From Raja brachyura (Eukaryota), in assembly GCA_963514005.1 (NCBI GenBank), contig OY740791.1, positions 51,708,001 to 51,772,000 of the forward strand: a stretch of DNA of 64,000 nucleotides. The letters run 5' to 3'. Position numbers and translations under genes: made by a program. Of the stretch, positions 22,930-56,288 are shown piece after piece; positions within the stretch are counted from its first letter, which is position 1; the number at the start of each line of letters is the position of its first letter. The notes beneath the pieces were generated by a model. It was given only the letters and a program-made list of their open reading frames with translations, was not told the origin of the DNA and made no database searches.

Positions 22930-22998
22930 TCACATTTTTGTTTGTGCTATTTGTGCATAGATGACAGATGAATCATCATTCCTTGAAGGAGCCAGGTA
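22930..22998 (-). CDS. Terminal coding exon with ITIM (YLAPSRNDDSSVIYAQIAQTKM*)
   Basis: Acceptor ttttctcttttag; VxYxxI motif near the C-terminus; TGA stop. Confidence 0.8.
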   Translation of the reverse strand, partial: YLAPSRNDDSSVIYAQIAQTKM

Positions 22999-55900: not shown

Positions 55901-56288
55901 GTAACATTATTTACAGAGAAGCACATTGTTGATCCGAGTCTTGCCCACTCACCTTTGATCCCATATATTTCATATAGTTTCAGGATCCGGTTCTTCAGCT
56001 GTGTCAAGGTGAATAATCCCGACCATTTAAATGTGGGTTTTTTTATTACCAGATTCACAGTACGGTCATCCACATCCACCTCCCTGTTCGTGTCTGTGTT
56101 TGCCCAGCCATTGCCCCACTGTTTGCTCCACGTGCCCCTGCCCTGGACGCGGAGAGTTACCACTGTCTGTTTTCCCCGCCTTGAGTGTGGTTCCCATTCC
56201 CAGACAAGAATGTCATTCCCGGGATTGTCCGGTCCTTTTAACGCAATGTCGCCTCCATTATCCAAAAAATAAATCTGATTTCGGATTT
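22930..56288 (-). CDS. Spliced gene (5'-partial) for a type I membrane IgSF receptor: 8 Ig domains (V*-C2-V-C2[WxC]) x2, TM, cytoplasmic tail with two ITIM-type motifs. Exons: 55953-56288, 49136-49405, 47782-48150, 47443-47703, 46557-46901, 44271-44543, 42331-42669, 40906-41169, 28013-28111 (or -28183), 26981-27031 (or 26933-), 23584-23637, 23130-23173, 22930-22998
   Basis: Internal exons have AG acceptors and GT donors. All Ig exons are multiples of 3 and phase 1-1. The joined frame is open through to TGA at 22930-22932. Ig motifs, a hydrophobic TM followed by RKLR, and I/VxYxxI motifs are present. Confidence 0.85.
23130..23173 (-). CDS. Cytoplasmic exon 3 (GCRDGTSPSNQETDM), phase 1-0
   Basis: Acceptor caactatcgcag, donor ATG|gtcagt; supplies exactly the phase shift needed to read the last exon in its ITIM frame. 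Confidence 0.72.
23584..23637 (-). CDS. Cytoplasmic exon 2 with ITIM (DTDDIHYGSIIFQNKAQT)
   Basis: Acceptor ttattctttacag, donor G|gtaaat, 54 nt; IxYxxI motif. Confidence 0.8.
23920..26700 (-). mobile_element. Nested, degenerate CR1 fragments (includes a Harbinger-MITE remnant at ~25195-25407)
   Basis: PVTSGV...[21 protein letters not shown]; gtgggacagg TIR remnant at ~25395. Confidence 0.8.
26981..27031 (-). CDS. Cytoplasmic exon 1 (GLGKETQRPPQSKGEAE); alternative in-frame donor at 26933 adds GKSQLSSITDAIQHKP
   Basis: Acceptor cctttgtctgaacag; donors G|gtaaat and G|gtaaca; phase 1-1. Confidence 0.65.
28013..28183 (-). CDS. Stalk/transmembrane exon (...DNSYPMQIIIICLVASLIFILAVVLFLAIRKLR); two in-frame acceptors (exon starts 28183 and 28111)
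   Basis: 22-residue uncharged hydrophobic run followed by RKLR; donor G|gtaagg; phase 1-1. Confidence 0.82.
29361..29948. mobile_element. PIF/Harbinger-type MITE, CpG-rich
   Basis: TIRs agtgcctgtcctacca / tggtgggacaggccct, flanked by TAA on both sides. Confidence 0.8.
31425..38465 (+). mobile_element. CR1 LINE ORF2 (endonuclease + RT + 3' tail), split by a DIRS insertion at 33489-37665
   Basis: ETWL, GGGV, YRP, MGDFN, SDHN, KSPGPD, FADD, RPHLEYC; the halves rejoin as gtgagg-tt-atccactttgg. Confidence 0.93.
33489..37665 (+). mobile_element. DIRS1-type tyrosine-recombinase retrotransposon, internally degenerate (element A)
   Basis: Inverted terminal repeats (gaagaaggccc...gcatgcgcacca), internal complementary region at 37364-37474, HSTR recombinase remnants at ~36983 and ~37040, no TSD. 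Confidence 0.9.
39536..40338 (-). mobile_element. CpG-rich non-coding retroposon-like insertion with (tgtactt)n tail
   Basis: Abrupt GC/CpG-rich block ending in tandem aagtaca repeats; family not identified. Confidence 0.45.
40906..41169 (-). CDS. Ig exon D8: C2-type domain with WxC (EGRNVILTCSVS...LVW...KWICGLF)
   Basis: Acceptor ttgtttcccag, donor G|gtaagt, 264 nt; paralogous to D4. Confidence 0.9.
42331..42669 (-). CDS. Ig exon D7: V-type domain (GLHNKTYTVYRS...LDLICE...IKWTW...FHVRIVPVQFEDAGVYTC...LITVT)
   Basis: Acceptor ctctcttgcag, donor G|gtacaa, 339 nt; canonical V-set motifs; paralogous to D3. Confidence 0.9.
42930..43990 (-). mobile_element. Degenerate, internally deleted CR1 fragment
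   Basis: KLKGLKVDKSPGPDGLHPRILKE; LANNIKEDS...FFNYIKSK. Confidence 0.8.
44271..44543 (-). CDS. Ig exon D6: C2-type domain, F-strand Cys replaced by Trp (ITLSCTIS...LHWKP...LYTWEV)
   Basis: Acceptor tgtttccacag, donor G|gtgagt, 273 nt; paralogous to D2. Confidence 0.9.
44980..46518 (-). mobile_element. CR1 LINE RT and 3' end
   Basis: ORFs 45253-46519 with CR1 RT motifs and an (aacatag)n tail. Confidence 0.93.
46557..46901 (-). CDS. Ig exon D5: atypical cysteine-free V-type domain (ASGDSIYF...VLKGP...IVWEW...NLRIRKPYFQHAGLFTW...FGIK)
   Basis: Acceptor ttttctggcag, donor G|gttagt, 345 nt; paralogous to D1. Confidence 0.88.
47443..47703 (-). CDS. Ig exon D4: short C2-type domain with WxC F-strand (VRAEP...EGDNVTLTCSVS...LVW...NWRCGLF)
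   Basis: Acceptor tgtttccacag, donor G|gtaagc, 261 nt; 78-nt intron separates it from D3. Confidence 0.9.
47782..48150 (-). CDS. Ig exon D3: V-type domain (SLYQRKYTVYRS...LHLVC...MTW...FSLRVVPVMFQDAGCYKC...LITVK)
   Basis: Acceptor ctctccaatacag, donor G|gtagga, 369 nt; DxGxYxC motif. Confidence 0.9.
49136..49405 (-). CDS. Ig exon D2: C2-type domain (VEASPQ...VTLSCTIS...LHWRP...LYVCEV)
   Basis: Acceptor ttcttcacag, donor T|gtaagt, 270 nt; canonical C-W-C; about 60% identical to D6 by hand alignment. Confidence 0.9.
50252..51598 (+). CDS. DIRS gag-like ORF1 running into the start of the RT ORF (VGGRLQLF...W)
   Basis: Long ORF inside DIRS termini with LFGEDL and VGGRL motifs typical of DIRS. 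Confidence 0.7.
   Translation: MPQGAVATPAGRKAKQKSVRPVYSDESDDDDSPPSNKKVWGRLDKMEQMLQTMMSHEVFQSGSHTPRIPQTASGRGPYGDEDLNTPEFQKESPSPAPCLGLVETTLEQDSGEPGQEDFDPEVGVTAFVHTPRHMSHAPVVPDVARNVAIPEGTGEAMEENLACNINYMASLNYTDSIMEWMTTRYQVPVKVASLKMPTVNSAIWAQMSASMRGQELRFQRVLKLVGAGITAFGKMVQGAPMSGTQQDMLALLCNAHFEINCIRKIAIKRTLNPRFAALCRSSNIQAPNFLFGEDLLKQIKDREEEAKTIGLMKIYIPSARSFSTRRASDAGAGPSRVLPVGRHPYPPAYSNYNPNMARRVRNLRSTMEVRVTDSVQDKSSGEQPPVGGRLQLFYDEWCCITSELFRLDSVSGSRIEFMSGIHPLAQNMPSGVFFFFLDQKLCRCFPHL
51583..52331 (+). mobile_element. 5'-truncated L1 fragment (CCHC end, 3' UTR, poly-A) inserted in DIRS B
   Basis: SPICDKC...HSFVSC; A-tail; 16-bp TSD agaaactctgcaggtg at 51567-51582 and 52332-52347. Confidence 0.9.
52348..53140 (+). 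pseudogene. DIRS reverse transcriptase remnant
   Basis: IDLKDAY, LPNGLTSAPRLFTK, YLDD; frameshifts and a ~103-bp tandem duplication. Confidence 0.85.
53141..53830 (+). pseudogene. DIRS tyrosine recombinase remnant
   Basis: HPLVSRFMRG...PPKPRY, LTLK...LMALASAQ, KQSRPG, HSTRAASTS, AAGWS. Confidence 0.88.
55953..56288 (-). CDS. Ig exon D1: atypical cysteine-free V-type domain (EIRNQIYF...IALKGP...LVWEW...NLVIKKPTFKWSGLFTL...YGIK)
   Basis: Acceptor tttccaacag, donor G|gtgagt, 336 nt; paralogous to D5. Confidence 0.85.

Follow-up and report, generated by a model that had tools for sequence, protein, structure and literature searches.

An eight-immunoglobulin-domain receptor gene with two inhibitory motifs in the skate Raja brachyura, probably a long-form member of an unnamed family with a CD4/LAG-3-like cassette

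Within a 64,000-nucleotide (nt) stretch of the genome of the skate Raja brachyura (contig OY740791.1, positions 51,708,001 to 51,772,000; hereafter the window, numbered from its first letter) we analyzed a minus-strand gene, running from 56288 to 22930, whose product would be a receptor with eight immunoglobulin (Ig) domains, a transmembrane segment and a tail of inhibitory type. That this is a real gene for an eight-Ig inhibitory receptor is confirmed. It is probably an ordinary long-form inhibitory member of a conserved and unnamed multigene family, whose four-domain cassette is the nearest detectable relative of CD4 and LAG-3. The original prediction, made from the letters of the window, had described an intact and unusually long inhibitory receptor of a cartilaginous-fish family, related in architecture to CD4 and LAG-3 and not recognised as a named gene. 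Our evidence was gathered exon by exon or from database proteins, by sequence searches and by comparison of folds.

The gene has 13 exons (Table 1). A reading of the open stretches with their flanks gave, for 13 of 13 exons, an acceptor AG after a pyrimidine tract and a donor GT. The phases are 1-1 through the Ig exons, the transmembrane exon and the first tail exons, T3 ends and T4 starts in phase 0, and a TGA stop codon at 22932-22930 closes the frame. No internal stop was found over the summed length of 2846 nt (about 948 amino acids), so with borders of AG/GT and compatible phases the 13 exons do join into one open frame, as had been predicted. Every Ig-like reading frame within 22930-56288 is on the minus strand. 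Pfam matches (E 1e-4 to 2.5e-8) were obtained for six of the eight Ig exons, to V-set for D3 and D7 and to Ig or Ig_3 for D2, D4, D6 and D8. The other two, D1 and D5, contain no cysteine and had no Pfam match; D1 is predicted to fold as a V-set domain (AlphaFold2 predicted local distance difference test, pLDDT, 85), and the predicted number of eight Ig domains stands.

The Ig exons form a doubled four-exon cassette, for which we use the letters A (cysteine-free V-set), B (C2), C (V-set) and D (C2). Identity between the two copies is 41% for D1 and D5, 65% for D2 and D6, 45% for D3 and D7, and 52% for D4 and D8. The exons have close counterparts in other species: D1 is 83% identical to the A domain of Amblyraja radiata XP_032885416, D2 is 88-90% identical to skate relatives, D5 shares 85-86% of its residues with an A domain that lies internally in Leucoraja erinacea LOC129701496, and T4 matches the C-terminal ends of relatives in sharks and rays at 57-80% identity. 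In D6 the second cysteine is replaced by tryptophan (LYTWEV), a residue shared with a Leucoraja relative. Further Ig exons were found neither upstream of D1 nor in the interval between D8 and the transmembrane exon. The 5' end of the transmembrane exon (28086-28198, minus strand) contains 3.1 tandem copies of a 36-bp unit (DTSSPNQIIHLT / NTSSPNQIILLT / DNSYPMQIIIIC). Since these copies are in frame and each has an acceptor-like TTCTGxCAG, the use of alternative acceptors would shift the stalk by 12 or 24 residues.

The transmembrane segment, QIIIICLVASLIFILAVVLFLAI, is uncharged. In the tail behind it two motifs, IHYGSI and VIYAQI, 40 residues apart, fit the consensus of the immunoreceptor tyrosine-based inhibitory motif (ITIM), (I/V/L/S)xYxx(I/V/L), in what would be a type-I receptor. 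The single cysteine of the tail stands in GCRDG, and neither a CxC nor a CxH motif is present. In the uncharged transmembrane segment, the two canonical ITIMs and the missing CxC/CxH motif the sequence agrees with the original prediction, whose quoted tail peptides were recovered exactly. Relatives have homologous tail exons, and 50 of these proteins keep the motif of ITIM 1, I[HQ]Y[GA]S[IV]. Extra tail exons found in relatives (LYSN...EIQxMQ, AEYMSV) have no counterpart between 23640 and 26981. An inhibitory role for the receptor, as first proposed, is supported at the level of sequence by the canonical ITIMs and by the conservation of the tail in 41 relatives.

How widespread such proteins are was seen from profile searches. 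A profile of D1 and D5 run against 1.84 billion representative proteins matched only 35, and once four low-scoring rows that lack vertebrate annotation are set aside, these come from cartilaginous fishes, sturgeons and an eel. With a profile of 12 relatives, 85 more were found at the 90% cluster level (E up to 1e-3), and the family as retrieved comprises at least 126 proteins, nearly all of them an 'uncharacterized protein' in RefSeq or UniProt. Its hosts are skates, rays, sawfish, many sharks, the chimaera Callorhinchus, sturgeons and the eel Anguilla; the skates Amblyraja radiata, Leucoraja erinacea and Rhinoraja longicauda are 80-93% identical to the window exons. Cartilaginous fishes were thus rightly named as hosts, but sturgeons and an eel have to be added. 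A few automatic names have strayed into the family (CEACAM5-like, VCAM1-like, CD276 homolog and obscurin-like, as in the nurse-shark 'Obscurin-like protein' V9NJF3). No named orthologue was found, in line with the statement that this is not a named gene. The family appears in no paper found by full-text search, which does not reach many subscription journals, and is not mentioned in a study of CD4/LAG-3 evolution (PMC10768021). The genes were already in public annotation, without a name.

When the domains of the relatives were mapped using the window exons, the basic form of the family proved to be leader-A-B-C-D-transmembrane segment. A doubled form, ABCDABCD, of 850-1030 amino acids, with an uncharged transmembrane segment and a tail carrying IHYGSI and VIYAQI, is found in 13 elasmobranchs (Pristiophorus, Heterodontus, Carcharodon, Pristis, Heptranchias, Hypanus, Rhincodon, Mobula, Hemiscyllium, Stegostoma, Hemitrygon, Amblyraja and Ginglymostoma). 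Since this is the standard long form in these species, a receptor of eight domains is not unusually long, contrary to what had been proposed; a catshark model has 15 mapped domains and an eel model 20. Both ITIMs, with 35-42 residues between the tyrosines, occur in 41 of the 126 fetched proteins, and 14 have instead a transmembrane segment with a lysine (GYLLVKL-type) and a short tail of 15-43 amino acids. None of the 126 has the ITIM pair together with the lysine. Such mutual exclusion is the signature of a paired activating/inhibitory family, and on these sequences we regard this one as a paired receptor family, with an adaptor as the presumed partner of the lysine. Two variants of the tail were also seen: sturgeon members (e.g. 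XP_034783880) have a different one, ending DIYDNVENIYENC, with two YxN motifs and no ITIM, and in some shark members ITIM 1 is preceded by a third motif, S(E/D)YA(T/S)(I/V).

In a tree of A domains the internal and the N-terminal copies separate across sharks and batoids, with 4 label changes against a mean of 20 after shuffling; none of 500 shuffles reached a value as low. Since the internal A domains of sharks and batoids group together, the doubling predates the split between these lineages. The internal copies have much shorter branches than the N-terminal ones, which indicates that the membrane-distal domain evolves faster.

Established ITIM biology is the ground on which steps of signalling can be proposed for both kinds of member. 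The fast-evolving membrane-distal domains would bind a ligand, and this binding would bring the receptor beside activating receptors. After phosphorylation of both ITIM tyrosines by Src-family kinases, SHP-1 or SHP-2 would dock on the motifs through its tandem SH2 domains, and proximal signalling would be dephosphorylated, with damping of nearby activating signals. The sister genes with a lysine in the transmembrane segment and a short tail would signal via an adaptor with an acidic transmembrane segment, of the DAP12 or FcRgamma type.

The likeness to CD4 and LAG-3 is found both in a family profile and in a predicted structure. A profile of 12 family sequences searched against the PDB had CEA as its top match (3.7e-13), followed by four LAG-3 constructs (7tzg, 8so3, 9bf9 and 8dgg; 1e-11 to 2e-10) and by CD4 D1 (1e-6). 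The LAG-3 matches consist of two collinear stretches, covering the end of the V domain and the whole C2 domain, which fall on LAG-3 D1-D2 and D3-D4 with the WxC aligned. Against the same database D1 alone and the D1+D5 profile gave nothing above chance, and D7 and D4 alone gave generic Ig matches that do not discriminate; a search of the ESM Atlas with D1 returned only low-scoring bacterial hypothetical proteins.

The structure used was a predicted one, that of the four-domain relative XP_067899147 of Heterodontus francisci (mean pLDDT 76, 80-90 over most of the ectodomain), in which strands are continuous over the borders between A and B (122-137) and between C and D (323-338). With this model Foldseek placed CD4 and LAG-3 within the top ten by E-value, and by template-modelling score (TM-score) normalised to the target CD4 reached 0.41 and LAG-3 0.33, with all others at or below 0.26. 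In VIA-align the top 23 rows were all CD4. Four-domain CD4 had a Z of 16.9, and the rows of CD4 D1D2 (ranks 4-9 and 11-23) had a Z of 14.4-15.6 and a root-mean-square deviation (rmsd) of 2.7-3.9 Å over 164-178 residues with 16-20% identity, CD4 D1D2 superposing on the C-D module of the model (residues 229-426). The next two-domain matches, a nectin-like protein, CAR and JAML, had a Z of 13-14 and mostly a much larger rmsd. The family profile and the predicted structure therefore agree with a CD4/LAG-3-like architecture, and Foldseek, a comparison that the original prediction had suggested domain by domain, puts CD4 and LAG-3 first by target-normalised TM-score.

The WxC motif in strand F was found in 108 of the 126 relatives, and here in the D-type domains (NWRC in D4 and KWIC in D8). 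The B-type C2 domains have YVC in D2 and YTW, without the cysteine, in D6, so that the WxC predicted for the short C2 domains holds for the D type and not for the B type. Aligned with hhalign, A-B and C-D are homologous with 98.3% probability (E 1.5e-14), and A with C and B with D with about 95% each, from which it follows that the whole four-domain unit is of one origin. A V-C2 duplication has been proposed for the origin of the CD4/LAG-3 ectodomain as well (PMC10768021).

Several results weigh against this likeness. The total score of CEA is above that of LAG-3, the LAG-3 stretches reach independent E-values (i-E) of only 6e-5 and 2e-3, and identity to CD4 and LAG-3 is a distant 17-18%. Taken alone, the A domain of the window looks like any V-set domain and is not notably similar to CD4, its structural list being topped by 2B4, MPZL1, NITR11, T-cell receptor V and CD8. 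The CD4-specific Pfam families C2-set (PF05790) and CD4-extracel (PF09191) matched no exon at E up to 1 and none of 12 relatives at E up to 0.1. The CD4-like geometry of the modules is that of a prediction, and the network that made it may have learned CD4.

These results leave some room for the view that the likeness is generic to rod-like V-C2 modules, or convergent, and that the family is nearer to CEACAM or to CD2/SLAM. CEACAM would account for the top PDB profile match, with CEACAM1 itself at 3e-9, and one isoform in the family was automatically named CEACAM5-like; the tail of CEACAM1, xxYxTLNF ... IIYxxV, also resembles the pattern of the tail described here. For CD2/SLAM speaks the cysteine-free A domain, which best matches the V domain of 2B4 in Foldseek, where NTB-A, CD48 and CD58 are listed too. 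However, the score of CEA is the sum of seven weak stretches, the best with an i-E of 0.05, while the two of LAG-3 are longer and collinear, and among the best 50 VIA-align rows, headed by the 23 of CD4, there is no two-domain structure of CEACAM or of the CD2 family. The homology of A-B with C-D gives the whole unit one origin. CEACAMs, moreover, are without internal V domains, their pattern being one N-terminal V followed only by A/B-type C2 domains, whereas here a V-set domain recurs at D3, D5 and D7. We therefore find a CEACAM or SLAM affinity rather unlikely.

Whether the exons are joined in RNA was followed in transcript-like contigs from four runs of two related organisms, which were compared over 44000-49600 (D2 to D6). 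The contigs cover D2, D3, D4, D5 and D6 at 94-97% identity while the bins of unique intron sequence are empty, the pattern of spliced RNA. The joint of D5 to D6 (46557/44543) is present in three runs, with CT..AC on the plus strand and so GT..AG on the strand of the gene. In one contig D2 and D3 lie exactly 21 letters apart, just as expected from the predicted borders, and in another the match ends exactly at the D4 donor, 47443, and is followed by 21 unmatched letters. A contig of 691 nt from organism B starts in the end of D5, passes D6 and an unplaced stretch of the length of D7, and enters a D-type exon.

Part of the model is less directly covered, and this counts against the single gene. 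The organisms from which the contigs come are related at 94-97% identity and not surely Raja brachyura, and the junction of D4 to D5 is absent among the contig rows listed. For that junction, and for those linking D8, the transmembrane exon and the tail, the model depends on orthologous proteins in RefSeq, and several of these entries are fragments or extend into introns. The RNA check proposed at the outset has therefore borne out, in related organisms, the D5-D6 splice and the adjacency of D2 and D3, but not, among the rows listed, the D4-D5 junction. Indirect support for this last comes from the long models: D-to-A junctions are found in all ABCDABCD models of the 13 elasmobranch species and also in two Amblyraja proteins, XP_032885417 and XP_032885418, whose identity to D3-D8 is 64-92%.

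Two departures from the splicing pattern were observed. In run X4 a contig (47666-47798) reads through the D3-D4 intron, which has 78 nt (47704-47781, minus strand), at about a tenth of the depth of the neighbouring exon contigs; it is either intron retention or unspliced RNA. The models Amblyraja XP_032885416 and Leucoraja LOC129701498 read past the D1 and D4 donors into homologues of 55298-55952 and 47345-47442 (both minus strand), and these are either annotation artefacts or conserved isoforms. In the latter case soluble proteins of one or of four domains would result.

The 5' end of the gene is missing from the model, which has neither leader nor start codon within the window, a further point against it. 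The leader is strongly conserved in the family (e.g. MRPRFLCSSLPAGLMFGFFVFLLRPVSTQK), with the consensus M(R/S)xRF(L/F)CxxLPAGLMFxFxVFLLxPVSTQ, and none was detected on the minus strand of 56289-64000 by the listing of open reading frames (ORFs), by tblastn with the N-termini of 12 relatives or by a leader hidden Markov model (HMM) made from 66 N-terminal family segments, mostly leaders. This region is mostly long interspersed nuclear element (LINE) sequence. The leader exon therefore probably lies past the end of the window, and the gene being 5'-incomplete within it, the word "intact" in the original prediction is unproven at this end. An in-frame 'MCLKCYSFIFFLFPTE' just upstream of D1 was considered as a leader and rejected, because the D5 acceptor falls at the same position; it resembles a translated polypyrimidine tract before a strong acceptor. 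Also just upstream of D1, 56460-56567 (minus strand) encodes a peptide 50% identical to the N-terminus of Rhinoraja XP_078267139, a gene model without a signal peptide. This may be a conserved upstream sequence or a repeat, taken as a dubious first exon in the Rhinoraja annotation.

The gaps just described could suggest that the window holds two genes, with D1-D4 and D5-tail not in one mRNA, or a recent pseudogene of a birth-and-death cluster. The nearest Leucoraja and Amblyraja RefSeq models are indeed split, that of D1-D4 reading into the intron and the second starting inside D5, and decay would be in keeping with the missing leader, the lost second cysteine of D6 and the broken plus-strand paralogue that shares the window. 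But the D4-D5 intron, of 541 nt and bordered by GT..AG, was scanned and contains neither a leader nor a transmembrane exon, the D4 donor is used, and the D-to-A junctions recur in the models of 13 species and in the two Amblyraja proteins. Likewise, 2846 nt without a stop and a D6 tryptophan shared with a Leucoraja relative speak against decay. We hold both two genes and a pseudogene to be very improbable, and keep to one eight-domain gene.

Table 1. Exons of the receptor gene, in the order of the minus strand, with window positions.
Exon	Position	Strand	Evidence
D1, A-type cysteine-free V-set	55953..56288	-	AG/GT, phase 1-1, open; first exon of the model
D2, B-type C2 (LSC ... YVC)	49136..49405	-	Pfam Ig_3 2e-7; transcript-like contigs
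D3, C-type V-set, canonical cysteine pair	47782..48150	-	Pfam V-set 1e-6
D4, D-type C2, NWRC (WxC) in strand F	47443..47703	-	Pfam ig 3e-7
D5, second A-type cysteine-free V-set	46557..46901	-	Homology to D1; splice to D6
D6, second B-type C2	44271..44543	-	Homology to D2; joint 46557/44543
D7, second C-type V-set	42331..42669	-	Pfam V-set 2.5e-8
D8, second D-type C2, KWIC (WxC)	40906..41169	-	Pfam Ig_3 4e-4
Stalk and uncharged transmembrane exon (…QIIIICLVASLIFILAVVLFLAIRKLR)	28013..28183	-	Aligned with transmembrane segment of ITIM-type relatives
T1, tail exon 1 (GLGKETQRPPQSKGEAE)	26981..27031	-	Homologous to GLGNQRQKPQQTEENTE of relatives
T2, tail exon 2, ITIM 1 (DDIHYGSIIF)	23584..23637	-	Motif kept in relatives
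T3, tail exon 3 (GCRDGTSPSNQETDM), ends in phase 0	23130..23173	-	Open frame, splice sites
T4, tail exon 4, ITIM 2 (SSVIYAQIAQTKM) and stop codon	22930..22998	-	C-termini of relatives match

The surroundings of the gene are rich in transposable elements. The flanks of the window have transposon ORFs only, and the introns at 44935-46617 and 29400-40400 are packed with retroelement ORFs, among them CR1/LINE reverse transcriptases at 45253-46519 (minus strand) and 32657-33616 (plus strand). The first of these had enormous depth in all four runs, which shows how abundant such repeats are there. On the plus strand a convergent paralogue (1616-2038 and 7359-8094) consists of a leader-like peptide (…MLVGLISSPLIFLLQTIPAHG), the best match of the family leader HMM (E 0.03), and of C-type and D-type Ig exons, the latter sharing 65% identity with D4. 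Between the leader-like peptide and the C and D exons neither an A-type nor a B-type exon was detected, and this is probably a partial or decayed copy.

How CD4 and LAG-3 arose is unsettled, and we know of no described outgroup family that shares their cassette. We offer tentatively, and with considerable doubt, the possibility that the family survives as a sister lineage of CD4 and LAG-3, or as one resembling their ancestor, made up of ancient paired receptors built on a V-C2-V-C2 cassette. If that were true, CD4 and the ITIM-like LAG-3 would derive from such paired receptors, MHC class II-like ligands would possibly be recognised by the family, and the lineage would have survived in cartilaginous fishes, sturgeons and eels, most bony vertebrates having lost it. 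A family conserved since before sharks and batoids diverged would serve comparative immunology as a concrete outgroup for CD4 and LAG-3. It would also add candidate checkpoint receptors of natural killer or myeloid type in the oldest jawed vertebrates, and it raises the question of whether MHC class II is the ligand.

We find it hardly credible that the gene is simply CD4 or LAG-3 of the skate. Its V-C2-V-C2 unit does contain WxC, the best single-family sequence match in the PDB is to LAG-3 and LAG-3 carries an ITIM-like motif (PMC10768021), but eight domains and a four-exon tail with two ITIMs stand against the four domains and the tails of shark CD4 and LAG-3 (PMC10768021), RefSeq names the shark CD4 and LAG-3 genes as such and leaves this family 'uncharacterized', and the gene belongs to a multigene family that has members with a lysine in the transmembrane segment. 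The tail, the Pfam results and the gene names rule out that it is the orthologue of either. We conclude that the family forms a lineage of its own, in whose cassette the CD4/LAG-3 ectodomain has its nearest detectable relative.

The family can be compared with three groups of known receptors. The mixture of ITIM-tailed members and short-tailed members with a lysine in the transmembrane segment is that of clusters such as KIR/LILR, SIRP, CD300, the teleost LITR/NITR and the skate MDIR, and a fast-evolving membrane-distal domain is likewise a feature of paired families of the Ig superfamily, which differ from this one in that V and C2 alternate here in a four-domain cassette. The MDIR are the modular domain immune-type receptors of the clearnose skate. 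Among the 85 named relatives (E up to 1e-3), in which skates are well sampled, no protein bears their name, the comparison being by name only. With CEACAM1 and CD2/SLAM the family has in common an N-terminal V domain without the canonical disulfide, followed by C2 domains, and tyrosine motifs in the tail, which in those proteins recruit SH2 phosphatases or adaptors. It differs from them in its internal V domains, and from SLAM in that its motifs, with I/V at -2, are ITIMs and not immunoreceptor tyrosine-based switch motifs (TxYxxV).

With CD4 and LAG-3 the family shares the V-C2-V-C2 unit derived from a V-C2 duplication (A-B-C-D, here present twice), the WxC in strand F of the membrane-proximal C2 domain and, as in shark CD4 and LAG-3, one exon per domain. 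The predicted model also has the rigid, rod-like two-domain modules of CD4, with a strand running across the border. Shark CD4 has a CxH in its tail and shark LAG-3 a single-exon tail with (F/Y)xxL(D/E), both receptors having four domains, while the 'CD4-like' molecule of lamprey is disputed (PMC10768021). Unlike CD4 and LAG-3, the skate receptor has the unit doubled to eight domains (at least 15 domains in the catshark model) and a four-exon tail with two canonical ITIMs and neither Cx(C/H) nor (F/Y)xxL(D/E), and its family has a first V domain without a disulfide, a B-type C2 domain with YxC in place of WxC, and many genes, among them those of activating type with a lysine in the transmembrane segment.

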